A stretch of DNA of 64,000 nt from IMGVR_UViG_3300035183_000733:186001-250000, one strand, 5' to 3'. Positions 286-57,945 are shown, counted from the stretch's first letter. Made by a program: numbers and translations. Notes: generated by a model not told the origin, from the sequence alone.

Positions 286-1146
286 TTAATTATACCACTT
301 TATGTTCGGTAGTTCCATTATTTCCTTGCCCATTTCTGACAGCATCTTGCCCATGGAACTGTAAGTGAGCGCACGCCAGTGTAAAGGTGTCTTGCCCGTC
401 TTAGAGTTCAGCACGATTTTCAACCGTTCGCCGGATAGATTCTTCTCACTCATTCCGAGCGCTTTGAGCATATTCGGCTTGCTACTGAACCCGACCTTTT
501 GTGGCTTGATCTTACCGTCTTGTATTGTCAGCCTATAATAATCATCGCCAAGCAGAACCATGTTGGCATCCTGTGCATCGGTATTGTCTGCTTTTTTCCT
601 ACCGTATGATAATACTCTCTGTATCGGTATCGCGTAGAGCCTGGTCGTCCCATCCGGTTGTTTCTCCCCGGTCATTAGTATCATGCTCCCGAGTCCGGCC
701 TTCGTAAAATTCTCGTTGACATTCTCGTTCATTATCTCTGCATCATCTTGATCGAACACTGCAACCATGTTACCGTCGCGTACCGTGTGACCGTCGAACT
801 TCTGTAAACGTTCTTTGATGAACAGCGCGTCGTATCCCTGTGATATTAGCTTGGCCTTCCAATTTTTGAAAAACTCGGTATCCTTGGTGTGCTCCATTCG
901 TATTGCGTCCCACTCGTCCATAGTTATAACTTTCGGATTCTCGTAAGTCAGCTTGCATTTCATGATGTTCTCTCCGAACATCTTGGCAAGCTCTGCATCA
1001 TCAGCAAACCAAATACCGAAAGCCGATGGGCCGCTCTTAGTTTTTGACATATCAAACTTGTCAAACTTACTGTCGGTACCATGATACCAAACAGAACCAT
1101 CGGTATTCTCGGACTCAAATAAGCTATAAGTTTTTATGTGCTTCAT
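286..1146 (-). CDS. ADP-ribosyltransferase-like (ART-PolyVal-type) domain protein with internal-protein-like N-terminal tag
   Basis: WYHGT..KFDKFD....G..AFGIWFAD motif; start moved to MKHIKTYSLFES at 1146 (ATGA overlap with the upstream gene). Confidence 0.6.
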   Translation of the reverse strand: MKHIKTYSLFESENTDGSVWYHGTDSKFDKFDMSKTKSGPSAFGIWFADDAELAKMFGENIMKCKLTYENPKVITMDEWDAIRMEHTKDTEFFKNWKAKLISQGYDALFIKERLQKFDGHTVRDGNMVAVFDQDDAEIMNENVNENFTKAGLGSMILMTGEKQPDGTTRLYAIPIQRVLSYGRKKADNTDAQDANMVLLGDDYYRLTIQDGKIKPQKVGFSSKPNMLKALGMSEKNLSGERLKIVLNSKTGKTPLHWRALTYSSMGKMLSEMGKEIMELPNIKWYN

Positions 1147-2237
1147 ATCTTTGGTTTTCCCACCATTAGTTTTATGTGTTCTTTTCCGCCTATATCGCGA
1201 CCGTACCATCCGTCGCCTAGCATATCTGGGTCCGTAGGATGTTTGCCATAGAACATTATATCTTTACCTGGCATCAACTTTTTTATCTCGTCCTTGTCGT
1301 TGATGACGTTGATGTGATACTTGTTTATCAATATCTGCGCGAGCTTGCCGGACACCTCACTGTAGTAACCTATCTTAGATAAATCTTTAGCCTTATGCTC
1401 AAGATACACTTTCTTCGTGTCCTTCTGTCCGTCGTGTCCGACTCCGGAGAATTTTATACCGTATTTTGTCTTCTGTCCGAACACAATTAGATCGAGGTCG
1501 GGGCTTCCATGAATATCGACTCCGCTCCAGAAGTTCCAATCCTTGTCGGCAAAGACGTCCTCTGGCTTTTTGATTTTTGCATGACCACCTATTTCTGAGT
1601 ACGCTGTCGATATTAGATCGAAGAACTCCTTAGAAAGTTCCGGGTGTTCCTTTGGATTTATCTCCACCCACTGGTTTCTCTTCGGATCGAGTATCTCGCC
1701 AGACTTCTCGTCCATCTTAACGAGCTGCAGCACGTGTTTCTGGAATTCTTCGCGAGAAATACGGTGCTCGAGATCGTCCATTATTATCTCAGTGTTCCCG
1801 CTGTAATTATCGGCGAGCCACTTCTTCGTAATATTGGGGTCTATCCATGTATCCTTCTTGCCGAGTATAACAGTCATAGTCGGGGTGGCGCTTGCTGTTC
1901 GGTCCACTTGCACATCGGTCGATTGCTTATGCAAAGCCGGGTTGAATAATATGCCTGGAACGTTCAGCTTTCTGCACAGCCAAAACGCGAGGAACCCGCC
2001 CATCGAGTTGCCTATTATCAATGATACTTCCTTACCTTTTAAAAGATTTATTATTTGGTTGAATATGGTGGATCCTTCCCTCCTATAATCCACATGTGGC
2101 ATAATCACATTGCTGAAATGCGACGCGAGCCATTCCCCCTTATCGCCTGGATTGGAATCAAGTCCGTGCAGATATAATATAACTGGGCCGTCCTTTTGTT
2201 CGGCCTCGAATAGTCTGAAGTTTATTAGGTGTCTCAT
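1143..2237 (-). CDS. Alpha/beta hydrolase (YqiA/UPF0227-like esterase) fused to an unknown C-terminal domain
   Basis: LYLHGLDS, GNSMGG nucleophile elbow, LFNPAL. Confidence 0.7.
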   Translation of the reverse strand: MRHLINFRLFEAEQKDGPVILYLHGLDSNPGDKGEWLASHFSNVIMPHVDYRREGSTIFNQIINLLKGKEVSLIIGNSMGGFLAFWLCRKLNVPGILFNPALHKQSTDVQVDRTASATPTMTVILGKKDTWIDPNITKKWLADNYSGNTEIIMDDLEHRISREEFQKHVLQLVKMDEKSGEILDPKRNQWVEINPKEHPELSKEFFDLISTAYSEIGGHAKIKKPEDVFADKDWNFWSGVDIHGSPDLDLIVFGQKTKYGIKFSGVGHDGQKDTKKVYLEHKAKDLSKIGYYSEVSGKLAQILINKYHINVINDKDEIKKLMPGKDIMFYGKHPTDPDMLGDGWYGRDIGGKEHIKLMVGKPKI

Positions 2238-2240
2238 TGT

Positions 2241-3095
2241 TTATTTATTTGTATCTACGAACACGAACTCTATGTCAGATCCCGTCATCTCCGCTTTCAT
2301 CGATGGGTTGTCGTCATAGTGTCTTATAGAACCGAGCTTCTCAAGGAACGGTCTCTTCGGCCTATCATTGGTGCATATAATTCCATCCACTGGGAGGTTA
2401 TTCTCTTTTACGAATTGTTTAACCCATGGGTTTGGCCCGCCGTTCGGCATAGAATCTCTGGCAGTGACTATGTATATCGTGTGAGTCTTTGCCTCCTCGC
2501 GCATCTTGTCAATCATCTCGTCATTCGGAGTCCACAGTTCCGGACTCGGCAGAGGGTGTATTGTACCAGGGTAGATCCCAGTATGGAGCACACCATCAAA
2601 GTCGAATGTGACCACCGACTTTTTATTCTCCGATTCGTACACAAGCTGCCTGCTTATGTGTATTGTTTTCTTATCTCCCATCAGTTCCCATTTATATGTG
2701 TCTGGTAAATCCTTTATCATCATCTTGTATATGCGGTCCCTCTTAGAAGGTCCGTTGTCATCATCGTCCTTGACACCTATGAACTCCACCTCGTACTCCA
2801 CCTCGTACTCCGCATTCTCATCGAGAAACGCAATAACAATATCGAGAACCGTTGCGAGCACTCTCATAGCGTTGTCGGCATTACCGAACCCGGTGGCGTT
2901 GACTCCGTACTTATCGGACTCGAACGTCACCTTGTACGTGTTGTCGTACCCGCTCGACATGAACTCGACGAAGTATCTGTCGTCATCCGAATTGAACGTC
3001 GCGACCCTATTGGTGGTAGCAGGGATGGTCGTCCACTTCCACATGTATGGATTGGCGTTCATCTCGAACAGATTGTATGCGGTGAGGTGCCTCAT
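2241..3095 (-). CDS. Two-domain protein with C-terminal HAD-family phosphatase
   Basis: TFDFDGVL motif I, IVTAR motif II, HYDD motif IV. Confidence 0.65.
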   Translation of the reverse strand: MRHLTAYNLFEMNANPYMWKWTTIPATTNRVATFNSDDDRYFVEFMSSGYDNTYKVTFESDKYGVNATGFGNADNAMRVLATVLDIVIAFLDENAEYEVEYEVEFIGVKDDDDNGPSKRDRIYKMMIKDLPDTYKWELMGDKKTIHISRQLVYESENKKSVVTFDFDGVLHTGIYPGTIHPLPSPELWTPNDEMIDKMREEAKTHTIYIVTARDSMPNGGPNPWVKQFVKENNLPVDGIICTNDRPKRPFLEKLGSIRHYDDNPSMKAEMTGSDIEFVFVDTNK

Positions 3096-3340
3096 TAGTT
3101 CTTGTCGCGGTAGTTCTTGGGTACTATGTAGTTGGCGTGGTTCTTTATGGTCTTCACGCGCTCGATCAGCTCGTATACCACGTCTTCGAGGTACGTGAGT
3201 ATCTGTGTTCGCTTCTCCTCTGCGAACAGGAATTTGGACATAGTCCTCTCGAAGAGCCTGCCCTTGTAGTTGAATCCCTTGTGTAGAACGCGGCGCTTCC
3301 TGCTCTCCGCTATGTCGTATAAACTTTGCTTAAGCGGCAT
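3095..3340 (-). CDS. Hypothetical protein
   Basis: 81-aa ORF overlapping both neighbours in operon fashion. Confidence 0.5.
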   Translation of the reverse strand: MPLKQSLYDIAESRKRRVLHKGFNYKGRLFERTMSKFLFAEEKRTQILTYLEDVVYELIERVKTIKNHANYIVPKNYRDKN

Positions 3341-3881
3341 TTTGTACTATCGGCATTTTTGTTTGGTTCCTGTCGGCGTCTGAGTATATAAACTCTTTCG
3401 GCTTCACTTTGTACAATAGACCGTTAAAAAGCGCAACGTACTTCTGCCCGAGCCCTGGCTTCAGGTATGCGAGCGTGCAGTGAGGTTTGTAGTCTGGATA
3501 CTCGTTTGTGTGTGGCAGTTCCTTCAGCTCTCTGTTAGTGGCATGCAGCCAATCCCCGATGGCATCGAACTTTAGCACGTCGAACTTGTCGTTGGAGAAT
3601 ACTGAAACGGGCCCGAGCGTTATGTCGCCGCAGCCGTCCTCGCCCATGCAATTGCGCATGCACGCGAAGGCTTGTTCCGCCGTGACCTCGTCCTGGTGAA
3701 GGCCGAACAGCAGCGTTACGTGCGGCTCATCCTCGAATCCTTTCTCGTCGAGGTCCTCCTTGTCTATGGCAGAGTGCAGCGTCTTGAGAAGTGGCACGTC
3801 GAATGATACGAGCGCGCACGCGAGCTTCTTCTCACTATTCTCGCTCTCAAAGAGCCCGGCGTATGTCTTTAGAAATCTCAT
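3330..3881 (-). CDS. 2H phosphoesterase, Acb1/T4 gp57B-like
   Basis: Two HxT motifs (PHVTL, PHCTLAY); YPDYKPH resembles FDDYTPHITL of T4 57B. Confidence 0.7.
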   Translation of the reverse strand: MRFLKTYAGLFESENSEKKLACALVSFDVPLLKTLHSAIDKEDLDEKGFEDEPHVTLLFGLHQDEVTAEQAFACMRNCMGEDGCGDITLGPVSVFSNDKFDVLKFDAIGDWLHATNRELKELPHTNEYPDYKPHCTLAYLKPGLGQKYVALFNGLLYKVKPKEFIYSDADRNQTKMPIVQNAA

Positions 3882-5611
3882 TATCCTCTAAGATTAGATT
3901 TGGTGTTCTGGTTTACCCCCGTGTTGTACGTCTTCGGTATGACCTTCTTGATGACGATGTTAACCGAGCTCGGTACCTCGTCGTCTACGTCCTTCTCGTA
4001 TGTTATGCCTCTCCTGTCGGTCCATCCTCCGCGCACTATGGCGAGCTCGCCCGGCTGTATGAGTATGTCGCCGAACTCGTCAATGCGAGGCGGCTCCAAG
4101 TTGGCGGTCGAGCTCCTTCCCGACGTCAGCGAAAGCTGATACTGGCGCTCGTCTATCTCTGACACTATCGAGATGTTGACCGAGTCTATCCCCGGTATGT
4201 TCTCCAATATTGAGATGAGGTCGGAGCGCGGGATACGGTCCCTTCGCCTGATGTTCAAGAAGTAGTCGCTCAGCTTCTCTATGACGTCCTGCTTTATTAT
4301 ATCCTGCGGGATGTCGTCAAAAACTATCAGCGCTATGTTTATGACGAACCTGCTTATCTTGGGGTCCACTATCTGCAGCTCGGTGCTCACTATCTTCTGC
4401 CCGGATCTCTCAAACAACGTCAGCACCTTCTCCTTCTGGAAGTCGTTGAGTGTGAACCTCGACTCGTCTATGTTGAAGTAGTTCTCGTTAGACTTCAGCT
4501 TCTTCTTGACGTCTGGCACGAGGAACAGGTAGATTATCTTGTCGTCGGTCAGGTCCGCATCATTCGGCGTGGTGTACGCGTCTATGATGGAGAACTGGTT
4601 GAACTTCTCGAGGAACACGATGCAGTGGTCCTCGTTAGCGAGCGTGTACGACCTGGAAGTCTTCGGCGCTATGAGCCTGGTGAGCTCGAGCAGCTCCGGG
4701 TTGGACCCAAAGTCCGGTGCGTTGATACTCCTGACTGTCAGAAGTTCGTTTAGGTCGAGCTCCTCACCGTACAGATTGTACCCTACGTCGTCCCACTTGT
4801 ACACGGCCTCCTCGTCTGTGGCGAGCACGAGGTTACCGTTGAGACCGGATGACACCACGTACTCGACGAGTATCTCGGCGCCGAGCTCAGGCATCTTGCC
4901 GAAGTGACCGTTGCCGAATATAACGTCTATACCGGAATTTATGCCAGTCTTGACAAGGCATCCTTTAGCCTCGCGCGGCATGTCGTACATTGAGTCGTAC
5001 AGCTTCCACTTCTCCCCGTTGACGTACACGTTGACACGATAGTGTTCAACGAGCACTGTCTGGTTGAAGTTGGGAGAGAACGACTGTAATGGCTTGCCCG
5101 TACCGGTAGTGCTCTGCGATTCGAGCAGGCCCTGGATTATGTTCACTGGCGTGCCGTTCTTCGACCCGTCCAGAGGTATGCGCACCTCGTCGCCAGGTAG
5201 GTCGAGCATGTATGTCTGGCCGTTGTTCACACACTTTATCTTGGTCCAGTTCGGCAGTATGACGGTGCCCCCCGGTATGTCTATGTCCGCCCCGGCCTTT
5301 ATCGAGAGACCGATCTCGCCGACGGCAGAGATCGCCCTCGTAGAGTTGTGCCCGGCGAGACGCGCAAGACCGGTGACCGAGTTGGCCCTGGTAGCCGTGT
5401 TAATGTTTAGCTCGGTTATGGAGTCCTCAATGTAGTACAGTATCATCTGCGCCAGGTTGTGCAGGACAAAGATTATCTGGCCATAAGCGGATGCTACCGT
5501 GAAGTTGGTCCTGCTCTGGCGGAACTTGTCGACGGTGAAGTTTATCGAGTCCTCGATGAGCAGTTCTATCGCGAGTCGGTTCTTCTTGAATATGCTTGGT
5601 TGCTCTGCCAT
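3881..5611 (-). CDS. Baseplate wedge protein (T4 gp6-like)
   Basis: LARLAGHN, IFGNGHFGKMP and IDSVNI motifs of the baseplate J/gp6 family; length 576 aa. Confidence 0.75.
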   Translation of the reverse strand: MAEQPSIFKKNRLAIELLIEDSINFTVDKFRQSRTNFTVASAYGQIIFVLHNLAQMILYYIEDSITELNINTATRANSVTGLARLAGHNSTRAISAVGEIGLSIKAGADIDIPGGTVILPNWTKIKCVNNGQTYMLDLPGDEVRIPLDGSKNGTPVNIIQGLLESQSTTGTGKPLQSFSPNFNQTVLVEHYRVNVYVNGEKWKLYDSMYDMPREAKGCLVKTGINSGIDVIFGNGHFGKMPELGAEILVEYVVSSGLNGNLVLATDEEAVYKWDDVGYNLYGEELDLNELLTVRSINAPDFGSNPELLELTRLIAPKTSRSYTLANEDHCIVFLEKFNQFSIIDAYTTPNDADLTDDKIIYLFLVPDVKKKLKSNENYFNIDESRFTLNDFQKEKVLTLFERSGQKIVSTELQIVDPKISRFVINIALIVFDDIPQDIIKQDVIEKLSDYFLNIRRRDRIPRSDLISILENIPGIDSVNISIVSEIDERQYQLSLTSGRSSTANLEPPRIDEFGDILIQPGELAIVRGGWTDRRGITYEKDVDDEVPSSVNIVIKKVIPKTYNTGVNQNTKSNLRG

Positions 5612-5633
5612 CCTAAATGCGGTTCTATTTTCT

Positions 5634-5641
5634 TATATATC
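5634..5641 (-). promoter_or_regulatory. GATATATA putative late promoter
   Basis: Recurrent intergenic octamer, 22 nt upstream of the baseplate gene ATG. Confidence 0.6.
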
Positions 5642-5647
5642 ACTAAT

Positions 5648-5681
5648 AAAAAAGCCCGCCGTTTAAATGGGCGGGCTTTTT
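5648..5681. terminator. Bidirectional intrinsic terminator
   Basis: A6-GCCCGCC-loop-GGCGGGC-T5. Confidence 0.75.
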
Positions 5682-5811: not shown

Positions 5812-6183
5812 TTATTCTGGTTTTTGTTCGAGGACCGCGTCGAGTCCCTCCTGGTTCGGGCTTATCTCGTCGGTCTCGATCTTCTGGATCTTCTTGAGGC
5901 TCGCGACGTACGCTTTGGTAGAGTTCAGAACCTTCCCCTTGCCCTCCTGGTCCATGCCGAGCACCTTCTGGATGAACTTAGACTTATCGCGCTCCTTGTC
6001 GAAGTGCGAGTAAAGCGAATACGCAGCATTGAGTATGGCCTTCCTGACCGGCGTATCCTTGTCCCCAAAGTCTGCCACCTTAGCATCTTCCACGAACTTG
6101 ATGTCCTGCGGATCGACAGTGATGAACCTGGATATAAGCGACTCGTTCAGTTCGAAATCGGATATGTCCTTGATCTTGCGCAT
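5812..6183 (-). CDS. Hypothetical tagged protein (MRKIKDISDFELNES); probably extends to 5703 after correcting a +1 indel in an A-run near 5824
   Basis: The alternative frame continues NQNNNETHLRGIVAAAKAVVDYVEAKK...* to 5703. Confidence 0.6.
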   Translation of the reverse strand: MRKIKDISDFELNESLISRFITVDPQDIKFVEDAKVADFGDKDTPVRKAILNAAYSLYSHFDKERDKSKFIQKVLGMDQEGKGKVLNSTKAYVASLKKIQKIETDEISPNQEGLDAVLEQKPE

Positions 6184-6704: not shown

Positions 6705-7640
6705 TTATATATCGAAGCTGTCTATGCTTTTTATGTGAATTCCCTCGTATATATTACTCGTCCCCGGGTCGAACCTGCCGTTGTTGTCGACGCTCTTTAT
6801 GTTCTTCGAGTCGAATACGCAGTACTGGCTCACCCTGGAGTTCTTACTCGGTGCGTCGTACCGGGTATCTACTATGGCAAAACCGTCGTGCTGGCTGTCG
6901 GTCAGCTCCTTCAATAGCTTAAGGTTTGCCTCCTTCTTGTTAGTGTTGATGTACCTCTCGAGCCATGCGCCAGGCTTCCCCTTCTGACCGTTTATGTATT
7001 CTGTGTATTTGTCCCTGTAGTTCATGAACTGCTCGAATGAATCCGTGTGCTTCAGCAGCCTGATCTGGTCGTGCAGGTCCTTCATCTGCCTCTCTATCTT
7101 GTAGAACTTCTCGCGCTTGTCTGGCGTCATATCGTTGACTGACCAGCCGAGTGAGACCTTGTCCACGTTCAAGTCGTGTATTGTCTGCTCCAGTGCGTCT
7201 ATCTCTGATTGGTTGAACAGAGCCGGCTTGAATACCTTGGGGTTCCTCATGTTTAGGAACACCTCGTAGATGCCACCCTTAGACGAATTGAACATGAATT
7301 CCTTTGCCACGCGCAGGTCGTTCGTGAACCAGATGCCGAGGTCGTTCGTCTCGTTGTCAGTCGCCCTTGCCATCTTGTAGTCATTCATGAACTCCTTGAA
7401 TCCAAATGACGGAGTTCCGTGGTACACGACCATGGGCTCGCCGTTCTTGTCCACAACCTTGCTCGAGTTCTCCGGGTCGTTCTCCCAGTCACCGAACCAG
7501 GTCTTGAACTCCGGCGTACGGACCATCGCGTGCAAATTCGCGGGCAGGGAGGACTTCTTGCCGTTCGGTGCTTTCAAAGCAGCGTCGAGCGCGGTCTCAC
7601 CAGGCCCCCCGAATTCTGATATGTCCTTCAGTTTCTTCAT
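6705..7640 (-). CDS. ADP-ribosyltransferase-like (ART-PolyVal-type) protein
   Basis: FKTWFGDWE...SKVVDKNGEPMVVYHGT, GIWFT, YEVFLNMRNP, VFDSKNIKSVDNNGRFD. Confidence 0.7.
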   Translation of the reverse strand: MKKLKDISEFGGPGETALDAALKAPNGKKSSLPANLHAMVRTPEFKTWFGDWENDPENSSKVVDKNGEPMVVYHGTPSFGFKEFMNDYKMARATDNETNDLGIWFTNDLRVAKEFMFNSSKGGIYEVFLNMRNPKVFKPALFNQSEIDALEQTIHDLNVDKVSLGWSVNDMTPDKREKFYKIERQMKDLHDQIRLLKHTDSFEQFMNYRDKYTEYINGQKGKPGAWLERYINTNKKEANLKLLKELTDSQHDGFAIVDTRYDAPSKNSRVSQYCVFDSKNIKSVDNNGRFDPGTSNIYEGIHIKSIDSFDI

Positions 7641-8200: not shown

Positions 8201-8623
8201 TTACTCCTCTGTATTTTCGGCTTTCTTGCCCTTGATCTCGTCAGCTGGTTCCTTTGGCTCATCCTCGATGGCCGCGAGCTTGTCGTAGTACTTAGGATCT
8301 TCCATCAGGTGGTCGAGCGCTATCTCGCACGCGACCTTCTCGTCGTCTGTGTGCTCGAGCTCAACCTTCTTGCCCCTTTCGAGCTGGACGTTTACCTCCT
8401 CCACAGAGACGTTGTGCTTTGACGCCACGTCGGCAGCGGTCTTGCCCGATGCGAGTCCACCTGGTATTTCCTCCCGCGGTGCTGCAGCAGCTACGGCTTC
8501 GGCACCCGGGATTTCGGCCGTCTGCGTTTGTTCGCCGCCCGCGCCCGCGAGGCCCTGGTCGACGAGTTCGTTCTCGTCGAGCCACTCGTTGAATCTCATA
8601 ACCTTTTTGTTCATCTTGTCCAT
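8201..8623 (-). CDS. DUF5661-like protein
   Basis: GKKVELEHTDD..VACEIALDHLMEDPKYYDKL. Confidence 0.65.
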   Translation of the reverse strand: MDKMNKKVMRFNEWLDENELVDQGLAGAGGEQTQTAEIPGAEAVAAAAPREEIPGGLASGKTAADVASKHNVSVEEVNVQLERGKKVELEHTDDEKVACEIALDHLMEDPKYYDKLAAIEDEPKEPADEIKGKKAENTEE

Positions 8624-8626: not shown

Positions 8627-8944
8627 TTAGTCGGTTGTTTGTACCGGGGCTGATTGCGCTATCTCGATAACGTCCGTCTCCGACAGCTTCTTTTTCTTCT
8701 CTATCAGGTACTTCCTGAGTCCGGTGACGTCGTCGGGTGTGGACATTCCGCCGTCCTCGAGTATCTTGGGTGTTATCGTGAACACACACTTGCCGTCGCC
8801 GTCCCTGACCTCGCCGGAGAACCCCTCGGTGCTGCTGTCGAACATATACAGATAGTACGTGTTGCCTGATCCGCCCGTCTTTTCCGGGTATGGATCGGCG
8901 AAGTTCTCCACGATGAAGCTCTCGAATGTCTTAAGTCTTTTCAT
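8627..8944 (-). CDS. Hypothetical tagged protein (MKRLKTFESFIVEN)
   Basis: Start moved to the ATG at 8944, downstream of GATATATA at 8965-8972. Confidence 0.6.
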   Translation of the reverse strand: MKRLKTFESFIVENFADPYPEKTGGSGNTYYLYMFDSSTEGFSGEVRDGDGKCVFTITPKILEDGGMSTPDDVTGLRKYLIEKKKKLSETDVIEIAQSAPVQTTD

Positions 8945-9000
8945 CCTGTCGGAAGTAGTTTTTTTATATATCACAGATTTTTATTATCTTCGTACCAATT

Positions 9001-9454: not shown

Positions 9455-9573
9455 TTATTTGGATTTCCAAATGCGTACGTTTAGCACACCGTCGCCCTTA
9501 TCCACATGATATTTTATGCCATCATGTTCGGATTCGGTTAACAGCCTTGGTCCAATATCTTGATGTGTCTCAT
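9455..9573 (-). pseudogene. Small tagged ORF (MRHIKILDQ..LLTESEHDG...) with a one-base frameshift
   Basis: 119 nt from ATG to stop; two frames join near 9545. Confidence 0.4.
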
Positions 9574-10008
9574 TTATTGTTGTGGCTGGAGTCCACCCAT
9601 TGCAAACGGCCTCTCTGCGAGCGCATTTAACCTGCCCTGAACTATAGTGTGGAACACGGTCTCGGCGCAATACTGCGTCCTGAAGTTCCTGTTCTTGCAG
9701 TTGAAGACTATCAGGTCGAACTCGTCCTGCCTCTCGTTGACAACCTTGTCGATGACCTCCTTTAGCCTGTCGAGCATGGTGAAGTTCTTCTCAGATATTG
9801 ACAAGAAGTCCATACCAATGTTGAAACAAGCGTCCCTCACTGTCTGGTAGTAGTCGTCTCGTATCGGTTCCAACTGCCCGGACATCATATAATAATTATT
9901 CAGCCCGAGTGGATTCTGCGGAGAACGTCTGCGAACGGCCACGGTAATATTGGTGGGTCCGCTCCCATTGAGCTGTATCGATTCGTTTATGTCCTTGATG
10001 TACTTCAT
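9574..10008 (-). CDS. Hypothetical tagged protein (MKYIKDINES)
   Basis: 144-aa ORF, coupled to neighbours. Confidence 0.6.
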   Translation of the reverse strand: MKYIKDINESIQLNGSGPTNITVAVRRRSPQNPLGLNNYYMMSGQLEPIRDDYYQTVRDACFNIGMDFLSISEKNFTMLDRLKEVIDKVVNERQDEFDLIVFNCKNRNFRTQYCAETVFHTIVQGRLNALAERPFAMGGLQPQQ

Positions 10009-10358: not shown

Positions 10359-10384
10359 TTATTTTCGGTTGGTTTCTTTATATA

Positions 10385-11017
10385 TCACTTGACCGCGGCC
10401 AATTTCTCGTTGGCTTCATACAGCACCTCTTGCGGGACTACCTGAGAAAGGGTCTCGTAGCTGTCCGCATCCGCCCTGGTTATCCCGAGCCACTTGAGGA
10501 ACTCGTCGGGATCCGACGTTATCTCAACCGACGACGACCATACGCTCTCCGCCTTCATTGCGCCCTTGTTGAGGTCGAACTTGACGCCCCTGCTCTTGGC
10601 GAGCGCACACAGCAACCAGTTCCTGTGTGCGCTCTTCGCCTTGCCGGTCACCTTCGCGTACACGAATTTGGACCATTCTGGGTAGTACACCGGTATGAGG
10701 TCTACCTGCACCATCCCGTTGATCGCCTTGCCACATATCGGGAATCCGAAGCTGTACACTGATATTCCCGGCATCGCCTTGCCCTGGACGGTCTTGCCAA
10801 GCTTGGCGCTCATGACCCATGTAAAGTCCTGCTTCGGATCGACTCTCACACCAAGATCCAGGTCGCCGGACAGTCCCTCCTCCCGGTGCCACGCTGATCC
10901 TATTAGCATGACCGTCTCGACCTTCGAGTGATCGAGGAACCTCTTTAATGGAGAGAGTGTCTGGCGTGCCTCGTCACCAGTTATCTTTCTAACACCTTGT
11001 ATCGCATATCCCCCCAT
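10385..11017 (-). CDS. Pol-beta superfamily nucleotidyltransferase
   Basis: IGSA.....SGDLDL signature and a third Asp in VQVDLI. Confidence 0.65.
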   Translation of the reverse strand: MGGYAIQGVRKITGDEARQTLSPLKRFLDHSKVETVMLIGSAWHREEGLSGDLDLGVRVDPKQDFTWVMSAKLGKTVQGKAMPGISVYSFGFPICGKAINGMVQVDLIPVYYPEWSKFVYAKVTGKAKSAHRNWLLCALAKSRGVKFDLNKGAMKAESVWSSSVEITSDPDEFLKWLGITRADADSYETLSQVVPQEVLYEANEKLAAVK

Positions 11018-11310
11018 TATCTTGTAGTTTCTGTCTTTGCAAGTTCCAATGCCTCCTTGTACGTATTATTGTCGGGGTATAGTCTGCAGAGCTTGCCTAT
11101 CCATGATACTATCTGGTCCTTCTTGTCCTTGGTGAATATGCCCTTGCCTACCGAGATGTAATGAAAATTGCTCAGGACATCCTCCTTGGAAATACTCGGA
11201 TGGTCCTCAAACGCGCTAAGCTCCTCTTCAGTCGGTTCTCTGTACAGAGTACGATCGAACACCATGATTGGTTTCTCATTGAAACTTTCGTATAGTTTTA
11301 GATGTTTCAT
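11017..11310 (-). CDS. Hypothetical tagged protein (MKHLKLYESFNE)
   Basis: Start moved to the ATG at 11310. Confidence 0.6.
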   Translation of the reverse strand: MKHLKLYESFNEKPIMVFDRTLYREPTEEELSAFEDHPSISKEDVLSNFHYISVGKGIFTKDKKDQIVSWIGKLCRLYPDNNTYKEALELAKTETTR

Positions 11311-11365: not shown

Positions 11366-12515
11366 CTACTTTATAGTTTTAACACCCTTACCGTTATATA
11401 TCCAAAACTCGAACTTAATACCAAGTGCTTCTGCTGCTTGTTTTTTTAATAAGTTCAATGGAAGGTTTGTTTTTAATGTATAGTCGCACTTAACCTCCAC
11501 TATTCTATTCTCAGATATTATATAAATATCGGGGTAGTACTTGCGTTTAATTCCTACAGAATCGACATACCAGATGCGCCCCGTGTGCTTCTCTATCTCT
11601 GCGTTCGACACCACTATGTCGTCCTCCACATACCCCATGTTAAGCAGGTCGTTGATAGCAAACCCTTCGTACCCTTGGATCTTCTCGAGCCTACCAGACG
11701 GGAACATGTATAATTTCTTCTTGAACTGTGCTGACTTGTTAGCATCAAACGACGGAGCGTGCTGCATGATGTGCTCTACGCCATACCGCTCCACCATCGT
11801 CTCCCTGAACTTGGCCCTGAAATCCTTGGACTGTGTGTACCAGTCTGCACCGTGCTTTGACCTGTTTGTGTTGCGAGCCTTTTCTTTCACCACATCCGAA
11901 CACATCGATGACGCGCCTCCGTACCTCTCCTTGTTTGTATTTTGTAACTTCTTCATTACGGACTTGTTTTGTAGCACATGGTCTACACCGTACTTGGCAC
12001 GGACCGTATCGATCTTCCTCTTCTTTGACTGGTCGGATTGCGTGTGGTGCTCGACTCCGTACTTTTTGATATAAGTTAACTTTGACTTTATCCTTGAAGT
12101 TCTGAGATTGCGTCTGGTGATCACAACCGTACCGCTCGCGGTTTGTCGCTATGACCTTTTCTTTGCATTCTTTGGTCTCAAAATAATTGTCGACTCCATA
12201 CTTAGCTTTCACTGCTTCCTGCGTCTTATCTAAGTTATACTTCTTCTTGCATTCTATAGCAGTACATGTAGCGTAATAGTTAACTGCATTTGTTGGCTTG
12301 ATGCCATACCGATCGATGGAGAATTTTCTCATCTTTGAAAACTCTCGCGGGGCCGAACAATATGGACAAACCTCAATCTCATAGCTGGAAAACCACACGT
12401 GGTAGAACCGCTGTTGTATGGAAATATTTTCTGCTGGTGCATACATCTCGTCGAGAAACCGGGTCAGTTCTCGCAGCTCCGCCACATGTTCAGGGTTCTT
12501 CGATATACACTGCAT
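11366..12515 (-). mobile_element. Homing-type endonuclease with KYG/RYG repeats and a C-terminal PD-(D/E)XK domain, split by a +1 frameshift near 12078
   Basis: Zn-knuckle CPYC; repeated KYGV/RYG units in both ORFs; YYPDIYI..IVEVK; deleting one A from AAAGTTAACTTAT gives KVTYIKKYG. Confidence 0.7.
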
Positions 12516-24864: not shown

Positions 24865-25650
24865 TTAGGCCGCTGCTTGCGCGAGCTTCTCCATCTCCTC
24901 CGCATCCATGCCGACTTCCTTCTCGGCCTCGGCCTTCTTGTTGGCCGCGCTCTTGATGAGCTCATTCACTTCTTTGTAGATGTGCGCGAGCTCGGCCGAC
25001 TTGCCAACAAGGCCGGTCAACGAAAGAACCCACCAAAGTATTCCAGAACCCAGAACCGGGAAGTGTATAATGCCGAGTGTGAACAGGAATATTACGAGAG
25101 CACCCATTCCGAGAAGTGCCGACGTCTTCTGTCCGGTTTCATTGGCGCCGAGCTTCTTGGCAACCCATGAGAAAAATTTACCAATGGCCTTGCCGGGCAG
25201 TCCCGTTACTTTCTTCAATGCTCCGAAGATCTTGTTCATGGTGTCCTTGACCTTCTCGCCGTCGACCGGCTTACCGGTCAGCTTCTCGAGCTTCTTGAAC
25301 AAGAATTCGAGAAACGCAGAATTGCCGAGCAAGTTACCAGCGACCTCCACTACATGTATGATGCCACCTGCGTTCTCGTTAATAGGTTGGTCCCTGATGG
25401 TCATACCCTCCTTCACGTCCTTCTTAAGCTGTTCTGGATCTATCTCCTCGAGGTCCCCGTCATTCTCAATAGCCTGCAAAAGGATTGCGGCCTTGAGCTC
25501 GTCGTCCTTAGCGCCTTCCTTGCCGAGCTCGTCCATGACGTCCTTGACTTCGCCCTGAATGTCCTTGATGTCGCCTGTTACAGATTCACACAGGGCTTCA
25601 AATGCGCTCGCCGTGTTGAACTGCTCAAATAGCATTGTTCTCCTCTTCAT
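24865..25650 (-). CDS. Tagged hypothetical protein with C-terminal hydrophobic helices
   Basis: MKRRTMLFEQFN; two hydrophobic segments near the C-terminus. Confidence 0.65.
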   Translation of the reverse strand: MKRRTMLFEQFNTASAFEALCESVTGDIKDIQGEVKDVMDELGKEGAKDDELKAAILLQAIENDGDLEEIDPEQLKKDVKEGMTIRDQPINENAGGIIHVVEVAGNLLGNSAFLEFLFKKLEKLTGKPVDGEKVKDTMNKIFGALKKVTGLPGKAIGKFFSWVAKKLGANETGQKTSALLGMGALVIFLFTLGIIHFPVLGSGILWWVLSLTGLVGKSAELAHIYKEVNELIKSAANKKAEAEKEVGMDAEEMEKLAQAAA

Positions 25651-36883: not shown

Positions 36884-37258
36884 TTATACCGACTTTCTCT
36901 CGAGGAAGTCCTTCTTGAGTCGCTCCAGATTTCTCTGCAGCCTTTTGGAGTTGTCAATAACCCCTGTGTTTGTGCCGCTCTTGCGCTCGCGCTTGAGTGC
37001 GCCGACCATATTGTCTATGTTGTACTTCATGTTGGTGAGGATATTCATAGACTCAGGATCCAGGTTGGTGTAAGTCGTCTTGAGTAGGACTATTTCGTCC
37101 GACATCTCCGTTAGGAGCTGCGAGAGGTCAATGAGGGTCTTCTGGATTTTGGCTACCTTCTTCAGGTTGTCGGAAATCTCGAAGCTGCCGCTGACCTTAG
37201 GTGACTTAACTTTCTCGTTGACAGTTTCAAACTTATCAAGTGATTGTATTTTTTTCAT
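36884..37258 (-). CDS. Tagged hypothetical coiled-coil protein (MKKIQSLDKFETVNE)
   Basis: Start moved to 37258; GATATATA at 37280-37287. Confidence 0.6.
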   Translation of the reverse strand: MKKIQSLDKFETVNEKVKSPKVSGSFEISDNLKKVAKIQKTLIDLSQLLTEMSDEIVLLKTTYTNLDPESMNILTNMKYNIDNMVGALKRERKSGTNTGVIDNSKRLQRNLERLKKDFLERKSV

Positions 37259-37292
37259 CGAACGTGGCGATATTTTATTTATATATCCGGCT

Positions 37293-50590: not shown

Positions 50591-50604
50591 AGAATAAATA
50601 TACT

Positions 50605-51740: not shown

Positions 51741-51741
51741 C

Positions 51742-53397: not shown

Positions 53398-53398
53398 T

Positions 53399-54049
53399 AT
53401 GAAGACACTCGTTTACTGTGGTATTCATAATTGCAATACCATCATGCAGCTCATAGATAAGTTTGACGTCATCATTGGATTCGATGCTAATCCCCGAAAG
53501 ATTGCGCGCGCAGCCAAGATACTCCCACCAAAGGTGAAGAAGGTATTCGGCGCCCTGTGCGACAAAGATACCGGACATATCGAGTTCAACATAATGAAGA
53601 AGTGGGACGCATCATCATCCATGGGCACGTTCAACCCAGAGTTTCACCACATGAAAGATCCCAACTCGGTGTTATACAATACGGGTATAAAGAAGTTGAA
53701 AGTTCCTTGCATAAACTTGTCAGAGTACCTAAAGCGTCGTGGAATAGAGAAGATAGACCTTCTCGTCACCGATCTACAGGGTATGGACTTGACCGTACTA
53801 AAGACCATGGAGTCTTGGATAAAAGAAAAACGCATTGTGAATATACAATGCGAGGTTGAAAAGGATGACAAGCCAAACATTTACGATGGGCTTGGCGGCA
53901 ACAAAATGAAAGATTTCATGGAACTGCTATCTGAAAACTACGACTTCATAGCATACCATACGGTCAACGACTGGTGGGAGGGCGACGGCGTATGGCGGTT
54001 GAAAGGCGTCGACGAACCCATAGAAATCGTGCCAGAGATTATCGAGTAA
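53399..54049 (+). CDS. FkbM-like methyltransferase
   Basis: FDANP, IDLLVTDLQGMD. Confidence 0.65.
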   Translation: MKTLVYCGIHNCNTIMQLIDKFDVIIGFDANPRKIARAAKILPPKVKKVFGALCDKDTGHIEFNIMKKWDASSSMGTFNPEFHHMKDPNSVLYNTGIKKLKVPCINLSEYLKRRGIEKIDLLVTDLQGMDLTVLKTMESWIKEKRIVNIQCEVEKDDKPNIYDGLGGNKMKDFMELLSENYDFIAYHTVNDWWEGDGVWRLKGVDEPIEIVPEIIE

Positions 54050-54494
54050 AGAACTTGTCGAACGACAATATCTTGCGCTTCTTCTTCTTCTTTGTCGGTG
54101 CAACACTTGGAACGTCACCAGAACCAGTCACGCCTCGAGATGCAAGAACCGGAGCACCCATTCCATTTACTGAATCAACAGTACCGAATCCGGAATCTGG
54201 TCCAGGACCTCCGCCTTCTCCGTCTTCGCTAACTTCGTGTTTAACTTCGTCGTACTTATTCACGTATCCCTCTTTAACTGGGAACCATCCCTCGTTCTTG
54301 AATTTCTCGAACATTTCGGATTCTGTGACAGCGAGTTCACCGGTCTCCTCGTCGTAGTGCGCGAGGCCTATCGGTTTGTCAAGCTTGAAATACTTGCCTT
54401 CGTCAAGATGTCCAAATTCCCGTATAACTACGGTCTTCTCGTCGAGTTCGGCCGGAAGCTGTGCGAGTAAATCTCTTAGGTCTTTTATGCGCAT
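54039..54494 (-). CDS. Hypothetical protein with a Gly-rich linker and tag-like C-terminus
   Basis: Ends KKKKRKILSFDKFFTR. Confidence 0.55.
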   Translation of the reverse strand: MRIKDLRDLLAQLPAELDEKTVVIREFGHLDEGKYFKLDKPIGLAHYDEETGELAVTESEMFEKFKNEGWFPVKEGYVNKYDEVKHEVSEDGEGGGPGPDSGFGTVDSVNGMGAPVLASRGVTGSGDVPSVAPTKKKKKRKILSFDKFFTR

Positions 54495-55267
54495 TGGTCC
54501 TGTATGTTGAATTTATTGTCCACTCTCTTGACGTCGTACATCCTTCTCTCCTTGCCGGCGAACAGGCACTTCTGCCCGTACTGCCAGTTCTCGTAGTGCT
54601 GGGCTATCTCCTCAATCCTGTCCTTGAAATTAACAGAAGCGGACGAGTTTATCAGCTTTGCACGTATATCCTTGCGAACATACGAGAAGTGGTGCATCTG
54701 TATCTCATTTCGCTCAAACAGCTTGATGTTGCCTGGCAGCATCCTTCTTGTAGGATCTGCAGCAACCGGCCACCGCGAACTCATCGAGAATACACGACCG
54801 TCTATTTTATATATCAGCGGGACGTAATATTCTTCGGGCGGATCCACTATGAACTCTCCGGACCGGTAGTACGTGAGCATCTTGCACGCGCTCGATTGGA
54901 ACCCGCCTGCCTCGACCATCTGCCTGGCGAACATGAGCTCGTCCTTATCGTACAGCTCGTCCACGTCCATCGTCATGAAGTGTGTGCACCCGACTGACTT
55001 GGCGAGGTCGAGCCCCCAGTTGCGCTTGGCCAGTTCGTTAACGTGACCCCCATTAACCTTAGGAACGTACCGAGCCATCTCATCTATCTTGCCAGACATC
55101 CTCAGTCTGCGCACTTCCGCCTCTACATCCGCGTTTATGAAATTGCCGAGGTTCGAGGTTGTCTGGTATATTACACAGATATAATCGGCAACCGGACGAA
55201 CACTGTCGATCGACGATTCGAGTAGTTCGATACCGTCAAAAACGTTGTATGCCACTCCTAAACGCAT
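54485..55267 (-). CDS. GT-A (GT2-like) glycosyltransferase
   Basis: GIELLESSIDSVR, TMDVDE, MHHFSYVR. Confidence 0.65.
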   Translation of the reverse strand: MRLGVAYNVFDGIELLESSIDSVRPVADYICVIYQTTSNLGNFINADVEAEVRRLRMSGKIDEMARYVPKVNGGHVNELAKRNWGLDLAKSVGCTHFMTMDVDELYDKDELMFARQMVEAGGFQSSACKMLTYYRSGEFIVDPPEEYYVPLIYKIDGRVFSMSSRWPVAADPTRRMLPGNIKLFERNEIQMHHFSYVRKDIRAKLINSSASVNFKDRIEEIAQHYENWQYGQKCLFAGKERRMYDVKRVDNKFNIQDQCA

Positions 55268-55277
55268 AATTTAAAAG

Positions 55278-56116
55278 TCATACCATTTTTAGATTTACCG
55301 GAAACACACAATTTTTTATAGTATTTTTATGTAAACCACTGTGCTTAACAGCAAGATTTAAACTATCGAAGTGAATTATTTGGTCATCTTCGGTACGCAT
55401 GTCAATCGGCATTAAATTTTTCTTAGTTTTTCGTATCTTATCTCTGGTATCTTTATTATGAGTTTTTCCATAAAATGGATTGGCTTTACCAAATTTTTTA
55501 ATACCGAACATTGGATTGTTGGTACCCGACATCGATTCTGATATTTTAGTTTTTGTTTCATCTGACATAACCCAACCTTTATTAGCATCACTAATTATCT
55601 TCTTAGTTTCTACAGAATGTTGTTTACCAAAAATGGATTAGCACTACCAATAAACCGACCTTTATTAGCATCACTAATTATCTTCTTAGTTTCTACAGAA
55701 TGTTGTTTACCAAAAAATCCGTTATCAGTACCAACGCATTTACCAGTTCTCGATTTACTAATTTTATTCTTTATCTCATCAGATAATATCGTACCATACC
55801 TGCTGCCGGCTGTGGGGTTTATATTATATCCATATTCACATGCTCTCAGTATATCTATAAAAAATTGTTCGCGTTCAAGCAACTTATGTACATCTTCTAT
55901 TTTTTCTATAATATCAAATACGAAGTCGATTTGTCCGTATTTGTTCCAAGCACGTTGTAGGTAGATATTATGGTGTAATCCCTTATTTAACTTAGCAAGA
56001 TGTCCAGAACTTTTATGGTAGAATCGTTGATAATAGTTTATAGCAGAACCTACATAAAATTTAGAGGTAGTTAAATTTTTAATTATATAAACAGCTGCTC
56101 CCGTATATATTTCCAT
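55278..56116 (-). mobile_element. GIY-YIG homing endonuclease with NUMOD3 repeats; -1 frameshift in a T-run near 55630
   Basis: VYIIKN..KFYVGSA; NGFFGKQHSVETK repeats; AT-rich versus flanks; adding one T joins both ORFs. Confidence 0.8.
55575..55717. repeat. About 59-bp direct repeat encoding duplicated NUMOD3 units
   Basis: Copies at 55575-55633 and 55658-55717 are identical except A5 versus A6 at the end. Confidence 0.85.
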
Positions 56117-56125
56117 ATCTTATAT

Positions 56126-56812
56126 CTACTTGGTACCGGTATTTCTGGCGAGATCGGACATTTTTTTATAAAACTCGAAACTTGTACTATCTACTTTATC
56201 TTTAAGCCAATTCAGTTCTTCATCATTTATTTTATACTGACATAGGTCCCATCTATGACCTATACCTCCAAATAAAGCACCTTCTTTATATCCCTTAATA
56301 CCTATGGATATTGGCTTGTCCGGAATGAATGTCTTGCCAGTCAACTTCTTCCATATCTCTATGTCGGTGAACACGTAGTTATCATCAGGCCACCGCATCT
56401 TGGAGGCGCCAGCTGCAGACATGAGCGTGCTCATGGCCGAGGCCCTTGGTAAATGCGTGTACTTCAACCAGGCGCGCATACCGAGATGGTAGTAGATTGT
56501 CTCACCTATGCCGTACACGAGCGGGCGACCTGCGTTAATCCAGTTGTTGTACATGGTCTCAATGTAATTGTGCGCATACCAGTCGTCGTCCTCTATGAGC
56601 ACGATGGCCTCGGTATTCGGGTTGGCCGCGAGGATGCGTTCACACCCAATGCGGTATCTCCAGGTAATATCCTTCTTGGCCGCGTCCTTAGGCGGATCGT
56701 CAACGACTTCAACGTGGGTCGGCTTCAGCGTCTGAGCTTCGAGCAACCTGTGTGCATTGGATAGAAATTGCGGTCGGTCGCCGCGGGTCGGAATTAAAAC
56801 CGAAATGTTCAT
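56126..56812 (-). CDS. GT2-family glycosyltransferase
   Basis: ISVLIPTRG, LIEDDDWY. Confidence 0.7.
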   Translation of the reverse strand: MNISVLIPTRGDRPQFLSNAHRLLEAQTLKPTHVEVVDDPPKDAAKKDITWRYRIGCERILAANPNTEAIVLIEDDDWYAHNYIETMYNNWINAGRPLVYGIGETIYYHLGMRAWLKYTHLPRASAMSTLMSAAGASKMRWPDDNYVFTDIEIWKKLTGKTFIPDKPISIGIKGYKEGALFGGIGHRWDLCQYKINDEELNWLKDKVDSTSFEFYKKMSDLARNTGTK

Positions 56813-57945
56813 ATCTTCTTCTTTTTAGCGCGGTCCTTAATACTATTCAGCGTCTGGCCAAAGCTCTTCTCAACATCGAATTTAACGTTAGATGTCTTGC
56901 GACCGTCCTCCTTATAGGTCCAATCCATCCTTCTTCCCATCGATGCGGAGTGCGAAAACTTTACCTTGGACTTGCTCGCGCGTACAAGCTCGTCGCGCAT
57001 CTGCTTTATCTTCTTCATAGTGACCTCGTCTGGTTTGCGGCCATAGAAGTCTTCAAATATCTCCAAGTATATCCTGACTATCTGGTCCTTGTTTAGACCC
57101 GGGCACGTGTTGGCTTCTATAATCCACACCTTGCCTTTCGAGTCGAGACCGAAGTCGAGACCCATAACCTGCAGCTTCAGTTTCTCACAGACAGTCGGCA
57201 TGATGGACTCCATCTGCTTCCACACCTTATCGTCGAGGTCCGAGTTCTTTATCTCGACCCACTTATAGCTGCTACGACCGTCAAGTGTTCCCTTCTTACC
57301 AAATAGGTCCTTGCTCGGGAATATGTTGGCACTCTCCCTCAGACTCTTGGCCTTCTCATTTATCGGGATCCTTTCGGCGATGTACACCCTCTTGCCATTT
57401 ACGGTTATCACCCTGAATTCCCTCTTCAGATCGAACTTCTCGCTGAACAAATCAAGTTTGAATTCTTCGTCCTCCGGTTTAAAACTGTCAAGTTCTTCCT
57501 TGGTTTTAAATACGGTGATGCCCTCTCCTTTGCTACCATCCTTGGGTTTGGCTATTATGGGGAACTTAAGCTTCGATACGTCCTCTTGCTTGAACACGGT
57601 ATTCGGCACGAAGTCAAGACCATCCATCGCCTTGTGGAACTCTATCTTGTCGTTGGCGTACTTAAGGTTATCGGGGTGGTTGTATATGTTCTTCTTTTTG
57701 AAAACGCCGCTCTCTATCAGGTCGTATATCTCATCATGATTACCATAGTTGTAAACCGGCAGCTCGGAGTTTATGGAGTCTTTAAAAATACCTGGCGCCA
57801 TCACGAGATCGAACAGATTCTCCGCCACACGTCGGACAAGGTGGTCGATGTGACTGAAAGAGAACCGATCCGAGTGCGGAATCAGGTATATTTTCCGCAA
57901 GTCTTTCGGGGTTGCATACTCCCCAAACTTCATCAACTTTTTCAT
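56809..57945 (-). CDS. ATP-grasp ligase (RimK-like) with internal-protein-like tag
   Basis: FPIIAKPKDGSKGEGI, REFRV, GLDFGLD, WIIEANTCPG; N-terminus MKKLMKFGEY; GATATATA at 57965-57972. Confidence 0.8.
   Translation of the reverse strand: MKKLMKFGEYATPKDLRKIYLIPHSDRFSFSHIDHLVRRVAENLFDLVMAPGIFKDSINSELPVYNYGNHDEIYDLIESGVFKKKNIYNHPDNLKYANDKIEFHKAMDGLDFVPNTVFKQEDVSKLKFPIIAKPKDGSKGEGITVFKTKEELDSFKPEDEEFKLDLFSEKFDLKREFRVITVNGKRVYIAERIPINEKAKSLRESANIFPSKDLFGKKGTLDGRSSYKWVEIKNSDLDDKVWKQMESIMPTVCEKLKLQVMGLDFGLDSKGKVWIIEANTCPGLNKDQIVRIYLEIFEDFYGRKPDEVTMKKIKQMRDELVRASKSKVKFSHSASMGRRMDWTYKEDGRKTSNVKFDVEKSFGQTLNSIKDRAKKKKI

Follow-up and report, generated by a model that had tools for sequence, protein, structure and literature searches.

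In phage T4 the capsid-targeting sequence MKTYQEFIAE is cleaved once beside the tag and carries any protein fused to it into the head (PMC8442874; PMC3012670). Propeptides of 10-20 residues with this targeting role are likewise present in T4 on the internal proteins and on the head proteins gp24 and Alt (PMC5694885). The subject of this report is a short peptide, here called the tag, that stands at the N-termini of otherwise unrelated proteins of an uncultivated huge phage. It was noticed in a stretch of 64,000 nucleotides (the window), which comprises bases 186001-250000 of the 373,759-bp IMG/VR virus record IMGVR_UViG_3300035183_000733, rated complete by CheckV. The shared N-terminus is likely to be a capsid-targeting propeptide of the T4 kind, which in a clade of uncultivated huge phages would have been expanded to dozens of mostly enzymatic cargo proteins.

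Other phages fill their heads by different means. Many inner-head proteins of phiKZ, 201phi2-1 and SPN3US carry a propeptide that the prohead protease cleaves after Glu; the propeptides are thought to target the proteins, which are ejected (PMC5694885). These propeptides are mostly longer than 100 residues, have no short motif in common and are cut at S/A-x-E sites by an S80 protease in another head lineage, whereas the tag described here is only 11-15 residues long, is shared between proteins and occurs together with an S77 protease (PMC5694885). Phage P1 also loads anti-defence proteins into its head and injects them, but it does so through a hierarchy of Dar and Hdf proteins and not by a common cleavable N-terminal tag. 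In polyvalent proteins, finally, 2-15 effector domains are joined in one giant polypeptide that is predicted or known to be packaged and injected (PMC5512222). The ADP-ribosyltransferase (ART) Alt of T4 is packaged and injected (PMC5512222). A literature search for the tag in huge phages found only the work on T4, SPN3US and P1.

Eleven genes of the window begin M-[KR]-x-[ILV]-[KQ]-x-[FY]-x-x-[FW]...E, and the form typical of this genome is M[KR]H[IL]Kx[FY]xxF..E. As in the T4 capsid-targeting system, the conserved peptide lies at the extreme N-terminus. The conserved residues are Met1, Lys or Arg at position 2, a hydrophobic residue at 4, Lys or Gln at 5, Phe or Tyr at 7, Phe or Trp at 10 and a Glu within residues 8-16, with a hydrophobic residue two positions before it. 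The initial annotation, made from the window alone, had listed 15 tagged items. Ten of them are solid (starts at 1146, 2237, 3095, 3881, 6183, 7640, 8944, 11310, 16975 and 37258) and the one at 10008 is partial, while those at 8623 and 25650 are marginal, the one at 9573 proved to be a stub and a tag at 57945 is unlikely. The items are given below; a slash follows the tag Glu, after which cleavage would be expected, and scores refer to the position matrix described further on.

286..1146, minus strand: tagged gene, MKHIKTYSLFE/S, with an ART-PolyVal ADP-ribosyltransferase domain from residue 19 (Pfam, matrix); the gene starts with the Met at 1146, and the ATG further upstream, at 1209, is not its start
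1143..2237, minus strand: tagged gene, MRHLINFRLFE/A, with a UPF0227 esterase-type domain from residue 20
2241..3095, minus strand: tagged gene, MRHLTAYNLFE/M, 284 aa, no family match
3330..3881, minus strand: tagged gene, MRFLKTYAGLFE/S (tag one residue longer), with a 2H phosphoesterase/Acb1-like domain
5812..6183, minus strand: tagged gene, MRKIKDISDFELNE/S, 123 aa, no family match
6705..7640, minus strand: tagged gene, MKKLKDISE/F, with an ART-PolyVal domain; its C-terminal SFDI-stop is encoded by the next late promoter
8627..8944, minus strand: tagged gene, MKRLKTFESFIVE/N, a product of 105 aa; the late promoter lies 27 nt upstream
9574..10008, minus strand: partially tagged gene, MKYIKDINE/S, 144 aa, matrix score 6.2
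11017..11310, minus strand: tagged gene, MKHLKLYESFNE/K, 97 aa, the top matrix score of the genome
16424..16975, minus strand: tagged gene with a GTG start, (M)KYIKDIGLFE/A, and an SprT-like zinc protease domain from residue 24
36884..37258, minus strand: tagged gene, MKKIQSLDKFETVNE/K, a product of 124 aa; the gene has a late promoter of its own and lies immediately downstream of a baseplate hub gene
8201..8623, minus strand: marginal case, a DUF5661 protein with MRFNEWLDE after an internal Met at 8599, score 8.9, outside the genome-wide set of 37
9538..9573, minus strand: orphan tag stub, 11 codons, MRHIKILDQGC and then a stop, next to smpB on the opposite strand; not protein-coding
24865..25650, minus strand: weak case, MKRRTMLFEQFN, a protein of 261 aa without a family match; a late promoter lies 30 nt upstream
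56809..57945, minus strand: ATP-grasp ligase, MKKLMKFGEY, score 4.2, probably untagged though a late promoter is present

The frequency of the tag was assessed in the whole genome. Gene calling was crude, the longest non-overlapping ATG frames being taken, and gave 518 genes that cover 90% of the sequence. A position matrix was built from the clear cases and iterated over residues 2-11. Scores of at least 12 were obtained for 32 of the 518 called N-termini, the next best being 9.5, against 0-1 matches in each of four internal 24-residue windows that served as controls. Internal Met positions reached a comparable score in about 3 of 2609 cases, one of which was the true start at window position 1146. 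An unseeded test, in which residues 2-13 of all proteins were compared pairwise with BLOSUM62, agrees with this result: it gave 35 pairs as opposed to 5-11 in three internal controls, and ten proteins had at least three partners where the controls had none. The motif is thus far more frequent at N-termini than chance would give. The initial annotation, with its claim of about 15 tagged proteins, was right as to the tag but too low as to the number: with corrected starts and with gapped and borderline cases added the total is 37 genes. They are scattered across the entire genome, and their largest cluster is that at 286-11310 of the window.

Apart from the tag these proteins have little in common. 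They are 40-423 aa long, and after removal of the first 18 residues the 37 sequences fall into 35 BLAST families, only three ADP-ribosyltransferases being linked. In an alignment the likeness ends at about column 13-15. Inside the tag synonymous codons vary freely (AAA/AAG, CAC/CAT, six Leu/Ile codons, TTC/TTT, GAA/GAG), and the DNA upstream of the ATG is unrelated between tagged genes. Because the codons vary synonymously and the upstream DNA is not conserved, selection acts at the protein level; the tag is conserved as protein and not as DNA.

It might be thought that the shared N-termini are relics of duplication or recombination at a common 5' cassette, in other words a functionless joint in a DNA mosaic. 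The orphan 11-codon stub, the complete tag copies at two C-termini (see below), tagged genes that act as insertions and differ between close relatives, and tandem arrays of up to seven tagged paralogues in IMG/VR contigs would all be in keeping with such an origin. The synonymous codon differences that run throughout the tag and the unrelated upstream DNA speak against it, however, and led us to reject a DNA cassette as the main cause. Moreover, the peptide is kept from 24% to 50% GC in front of wholly different cargo, and it is the hydrophobic and Glu residues that are conserved, not the nucleotides. We regard this origin as very improbable, although recombination at tags may occur alongside a real function.

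Even less credence is given to the idea that the motif reflects a requirement of translation initiation in a host that makes no use of Shine-Dalgarno sites, be it A-rich Lys/Arg second codons or a 'downstream box'. Gene starts of the phage do lack Shine-Dalgarno sites, their leaders are A-rich and the second codons of the tag are AAA, AAG, AGA or AGG. But such a requirement explains neither the aromatic residues at positions 7 and 10 nor the Glu site, nor why the motif is restricted to about 7% of genes, and within the tag synonymous codons are exchanged freely.

A capsid-targeting propeptide of the T4 kind calls for a T4-type head, and the genome encodes one. The major capsid protein belongs to the T4 gp23 family (Pfam Gp23, E = 7e-43), and solved T4 gp23 structures were also matched. 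Its nearest database relative is that of the uncultured 462-kb phage LR756500 (45% identity), and further relatives are found in Prevotella Lak megaphages (40%) and Tenacibaculum phages (31-36%). Since the Prevotella Lak and Tenacibaculum phages are among the nearest capsid relatives and Shine-Dalgarno sites are absent, the host is probably a member of the Bacteroidota. Portal, tail sheath and tail fibres are encoded as well. The prohead protease is a Peptidase_S77 of the T4 gp21 type (40.6 bits, above the Pfam cut-off) and is fused to a scaffold region in a single 662-aa protein (genome 111219-113207, minus strand; 17719-19707 of locus L007). The scaffold part contains about 11 tandem repeats of 14 residues, YSEYLAENLDKNIS, and the family of such fusions comprises 301 cluster representatives at E <= 1e-30. 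A megablast search of the structural region against a phage collection gave no matches. Contigs of two microbial-mat metagenome runs are near-identical to the genome, so that these runs may be the source sample, and wastewater holds a relative of about 97% identity.

The gp21 protease of T4 cuts after Glu and has Leu or Ile at P3. The tag offers a site of the same type, with Glu at P1 and a hydrophobic residue at P3: hydrophobic-x-Glu with the Glu at residues 8-17 is present in 33 of the 37 tagged proteins and in 109 of the 482 untagged ones (p = 3e-16), a comparison that is partly circular because the matrix includes position 11. The residue that follows the tag Glu is mostly Ser, Ala, Gly, Lys or Asn. 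The same type of site is also found in the capsid protein and the scaffold. In the capsid protein, residue 77 aligns with about residue 84 of T4 gp23, which places the predicted end of the propeptide at HSLNE43/S; the capsid protein of LR756500 has HELYE/N at the aligned position, and the T4 gp23 propeptide is 65 residues long (PMC5694885). In the scaffold repeats LAE/N occurs about 11 times.

The likeness to T4 is most easily seen in the relative. In LR756500 (GC 24%) 31 of 682 proteins are tagged, in a tighter form of the motif with the consensus M-K-Y-I-K-E-Y-E-E-F-[LI]-N-E-[SAN], against 0 of 2173 internal Met positions. Compared by eye, MKYIKEYEEF[LI]NE can be aligned with T4 MKTYQEFIAE if a gap of 3 residues is allowed after MK; the residue that follows is Ser or Ala in the relative and Ala in T4. 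None of the 37 tagged proteins has a BLAST match (E < 1e-5) in LR756500, so the label was kept while the cargo is wholly different, and the tag persists without shared cargo across genomes of 24-50% GC. The system thus resembles that of T4 internal proteins IPI-III and of the Alt propeptide in having a short N-terminal peptide of near-identical text on unrelated proteins, ending in hydrophobic-x-Glu, and the two have in common a gp21-type protease, a gp23-type capsid protein, a portal, ADP-ribosyltransferase cargo and variable accessory cargo genes. The T4 sequence given in the initial annotation is that of the literature (PMC8442874). There are also differences. The tag is 3 residues longer than that of T4 and about 37 cargo genes per genome compare with a handful in T4. 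The cargo is made up mostly of acidic enzymes and not of small basic proteins; in the narrow sense of small, highly basic and DNA-associated proteins, the tagged proteins are no counterparts of IPI-III. Furthermore, the protease is fused to a scaffold with tag-like 14-residue repeats, tag copies occur at two C-termini, and the host is probably one of the Bacteroidota; the system, unlike that of T4, is known from sequence alone.

If the tag works as in T4, its action could be pictured as follows. Transcription of tagged genes would take place late and start at the promoter that head and tail genes also use. The tag, which is amphipathic (Met followed by a basic residue, with hydrophobic or aromatic residues at 4, 7 and 10), would carry the protein into the scaffold core of the prohead, where the T4-type protease, itself fused to the scaffold, would cut after the Glu of the hydrophobic-x-Glu site at residues 8-16. 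The tag peptide would then leave the head and the mature enzyme would remain inside, to be expelled along with the DNA and to act ahead of any phage gene expression.

A protein-level address need not lead to the head. The tag could direct proteins to a chaperone or AAA+ translocase, to the tail or baseplate or to a site in the infected cell, or it could be a timing or degradation signal, without any head loading. One tagged gene lies beside the baseplate hub gene, one tagged protein has weak matches to AAA-type ATPases that stay below the Pfam cut-offs, and for related jumbo phages it has been suggested that folded proteins are transported into the head by BCS1-like and Clp-type ATPases (PMC7824862). 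Its acidity also sets the cargo apart from the internal proteins of T4, and the presence of tagged proteins in the head is a prediction from sequence. On the other hand, the tag is like an experimentally defined T4 sequence (PMC8442874), the hydrophobic-x-Glu site is common to tag, capsid propeptide and scaffold repeats, and a protease of the T4 type is present. Taken together, the T4 likeness, the shared site and the protease point specifically to the prohead core, and we think another address unlikely, if less so than a cassette or an initiation signal.

The core of the tag, aromatic-x-x-aromatic-[ILVM]-x-Glu, resembles the scaffold repeat, a pattern that was chosen after the data had been seen and from a small sample. 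When this genome and LR756500 were scanned with it, the protease-scaffold was the top protein in both (12 and 3 copies); N-termini gave 7 and 23 further matches, and about 35 were spread over the remainder of each proteome. The consensus of 75 protease-scaffold homologues retains the repeat YxxYLAE, and at least 3 copies are present in 112 of 150 homologues, while the tag-less Tenacibaculum phages have other scaffold repeats (0 and 1 copies of the pattern). A complex prediction for a 26-residue tag alignment and the 662-aa protease-scaffold gave a score of zero, with the partner poorly folded, and weighs neither way on binding. A tentative idea, with which these counts agree but which we do not favour strongly, is that the tag mimics a single scaffold repeat (aromatic-x-x-aromatic-[LIV]-x-Glu), co-assembles with the scaffold and is cut at the same site, so that a clade with hundreds of protease-scaffold clusters would have exchanged giant polyvalent proteins for a plug-in label. 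Were this true, the full set of injected effectors of each such phage could be read from sequence.

The same resemblance can be turned in another direction. Tagged proteins might enter the scaffold core only to serve assembly and be degraded or expelled at maturation, instead of being delivered to the next host. The likeness of the tag core to the repeat YSEYLAENLDKNIS would fit this, as would the fate of the T4 core proteins gp22, gp67 and gp68, which are cut to fragments and leave the head (PMC5694885). Enzymes that modify the host or counter its defences are poorly suited as expendable scaffold parts, though, and homologues of the cargo sit in proteins known or predicted to be injected (PMC5512222). 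A purely assembly-related role therefore seems to us improbable.

A promoter-like motif bears on the timing of expression. GATATATAA(A/G)AAA occurs in 69 copies in the genome, where about 11 are expected. The protease-scaffold gene, which the capsid gene directly follows, and the portal, tail sheath and tail-fibre genes all have it 11-60 nt upstream. The late promoter of T4 is TATAAATA, which the motif GATATATAA resembles. The motif is found within 120 nt upstream of 11 of the 37 tagged genes and of 33 of the 482 untagged ones (p = 8e-5); when tightly packed units on the same strand are counted, the numbers are 23 of 37 and 91 of 482 (p = 4e-8). The window cluster at 286-11310 depends on five of these motifs. 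The copies in the window are:

5633..5640, minus strand: late-promoter core ATATATAA (fuller form GATATATAAGAAAA), heads the unit from 5611 to 286 with four tagged genes
6705..6712, minus strand: late-promoter core, heads the genes from 6684 to 5812 and overlaps the last codons of the ART gene
8964..8971, minus strand: late-promoter core, heads the genes from 8944 to 6705
10378..10385, minus strand: late-promoter core, heads the genes from 10358 to 9574
11394..11401, minus strand: late-promoter core, lies upstream of the tagged gene at 11310 at a distance of 91 nt
37279..37286, minus strand: late-promoter core, lies upstream of the tagged gene at 37258 at a distance of 28 nt
43228-43235 and 57964-57971, minus strand: further copies of the late-promoter motif

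If ADP-ribosyltransferases and an Acb1-like enzyme are made late, the most sensible reading is that they are loaded into particles for the next infection. Wastewater 'RNA-Seq' runs, which were flagged 'probably DNA' and consist of short undirected contigs, yielded no transcription start sites.

The promoter also accounts for one of two C-terminal texts that the initial annotation had likened to the tag. Both are present, but SFDI-stop at 6705 is encoded by the late-promoter copy TTCGATATATAA. The other ends a 151-aa protein:

54039..54080, minus strand: C-terminal tag-like text, KKKKKRKILSFDKFFTR-stop

Outside the window two proteins end in complete copies of the tag including its Met, in each case preceded by Tyr-Glu and followed by non-coding DNA:

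genome 34925-35809, minus strand (locus L003): C-terminal tag copy, ...YEMRHLKMFENFNKDTK-stop
genome 348871-349332, plus strand (locus L017): C-terminal tag copy, ...YEMRNLKGFGDYGQV-stop

These could be remnants of lost downstream genes or working C-terminal tags.

Where the cargo can be recognised, its domains start at residues 19-30, directly behind the tag. Pfam searches assigned ART-PolyVal domains to four tagged proteins (one of them weakly, below the cut-off, in a protein that also has a GNAT domain) and UPF0227 esterase, 2H/Acb1-like phosphoesterase, SprT-like protease, NUDIX and topoisomerase IB domains to others. Matches to a ParBc_2-like nuclease and to DUF6496 were borderline, just below the cut-offs, and one protein has the weak AAA-type matches mentioned above. 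About half of the tagged proteins have no family. Of the cargo named in the initial annotation, two ART-PolyVal domains, the UPF0227 esterase and the 2H/Acb1-like, SprT-like and ATP-grasp domains were recovered by Pfam; a HAD phosphatase is not among the tagged genes, the NT5C/HAD gene at 29528-29995 being untagged. The recognised domains point to putative roles in host takeover and anti-defence.

This repertoire (ART, zincin protease, ParB-like, 2H, GNAT, NUDIX) is that of the polyvalent proteins, for which delivery with the DNA for early conflict with the host has likewise been proposed (PMC5512222). The architecture is different: polyvalent proteins combine 2-15 domains in one giant polypeptide, whereas here nearly every protein has a single recognisable domain and its own tag, the exception being that with GNAT and weak ART domains at genome 4330-5580. 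Comparison of the ADP-ribosyltransferases illustrates the point. Orthologues of the ART at 6705..7640 in loci L022-L024 stand alone and are tagged (e.g. MKRIKNISEF). In unrelated phages the homologues occupy residues 469-1556 within frames of 750-3344 aa and have no tag; a stand-alone, tagged ART-PolyVal was seen only in this clade. In annotated phages the homologues belong to the polyvalent proteins; they include a DarB-like protein, a crAss-like "RNAP-associated protein fused to zincin protease" and others of the kind, and all align only from query residue 14-22 onwards.

The modular head-packaging signal predicted in the initial annotation is therefore supported at the level of sequence, as the head module, the site, the T4 likeness, the conservation at protein level, the promoter link and the cargo all fit.

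A strict DNA pattern for M[KR]H-h-K-x-[FY]-x-h-F-E matched more than 118 IMG/VR stretches, and nearly all of the matches listed are real N-termini, e.g. MKHLKTYKIFES. Many of the contigs are fragments of phages of 300-480 kb, and four near-complete genomes (313-483 kb) had 14-38 strict matches each, compared with 0-1 in a backwards control. Three of these four gave an S77 match below the threshold (19.6-22.5 bits, cut-off 27) inside a frame of about 700 aa. By this pattern the tag belongs to a whole clade of huge phages. Only background matches to the strict pattern were found in PTm1, pT24 and Lak-A1, and Tenacibaculum phage PTm1 showed no common N-terminal motif (12 pairs, 10 in the control). 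When a widespread tagged family served as query in a protein search, all matches were to unnamed metagenomic proteins, and Pfam scans of ten widespread tagged IMG/VR families revealed no domains. In some contigs four to seven tagged paralogues stand in tandem; each is about 222 aa long, MKHIKPYKIFES.SPNFPTTREEVI..., and none has a Pfam match:

IMGVR_UViG_3300041003_000302 (locus L095), 1691-5996: tandem tagged paralogues; also in loci L066, L103, L108 and L132

The tagged genes are of an accessory nature. L194, a relative, has the 576-aa and 81-aa genes found on either side of the tagged 2H gene (3330..3881) in our genome next to each other, so that the tagged gene is an insertion. Over the interval examined (window 2725-6189), the wastewater relative is collinear with the window from 3039 to 5685 and unlike it to the left of about 3030; its match ends about 19-22 codons into the tagged gene at 3095, and where the window has 114 nt, at 5685-5800, it has 523 nt. 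With a likeness threshold of 90%, as in this comparison, replacement and fast divergence look the same. As the relative diverges on both sides of 3039-5685, the cluster of tagged genes is a variable region. The tag stub, too, adjoins an inserted gene, smpB.

Several observations weigh against a capsid-targeting propeptide. We infer core binding, cleavage, retention in the head and injection from sequence, and the late specificity of GATATATAA only from the genes that lie downstream of it. Fourteen of the 37 tagged genes have no late-promoter motif in reach, among them five at the contig's left end. With a median pI of 5.5, versus 6.7 for the rest, the tagged proteins are acidic, while T4 internal proteins are highly basic, and an early effector role is not obvious for topoisomerase IB and the weak AAA-like ATPase. 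In the related phage PTm1 a protease-scaffold fusion occurs without the tag, so that the fusion alone does not imply a tag system. Finally, searches for a cultured phage of the tag-bearing clade found none.

A tag that works as in T4 would be for virion cargo something like a signal peptide. A simple sequence scan would then list the proteins that a huge, uncultivated phage injects before its genes are expressed, some 37 here and dozens per genome in relatives. Because many of them are without a known family and those recognised include ADP-ribosyltransferases and an Acb1-like enzyme, the list would be a hunting ground for anti-defence and host-takeover functions. The finding also suggests that phages have arrived at two solutions for the delivery of effectors, domains fused in a giant protein or individual tags. 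In addition, the tag is a candidate means of bringing foreign proteins into phage heads within this clade, for which Bacteroidota are the probable hosts.

Some other features of the genome may be mentioned. The smpB gene is full-length (Pfam E = 6.5e-49) and lies on the plus strand at window 9001-9453, opposite to the tagged cluster and beside the 11-codon stub; ARAGORN with tmRNA detection switched on yielded only tRNAs in the genome. Two of the 49 tRNA genes have an amber-reading CUA anticodon (genome 19877-19952 and 42187-42258, outside the window, in loci L003 and L004). Amber recoding was considered for this reason and dropped, since TAG terminates 29 of 265 long genes, and the genome was read with the standard code. 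A tRNA with the four-base anticodon ttgc (26306-26380, minus strand), which ARAGORN reported in the tRNA cluster at 26.3-27.3 kb of the window, could be a frameshift-suppressor-like tRNA or an artefact.

The frame at 24054-24965 (minus strand) overlaps the weakly tag-like frame 24865-25650, and BLASTP shows its C-terminal two-thirds to be homologous to the major capsid protein, over that protein's C-terminal half (E = 5e-12). By this homology it is a capsid-fold paralogue, and it may be a vertex protein. The sole long plus-strand block of the window extends over 46.5-54 kb (46500-54049), with minus-strand frames at 54485-57945 just beyond it; from the look of their translations the frames at 46.5-58 kb may encode glycosyltransferases or sugar-modifying enzymes.

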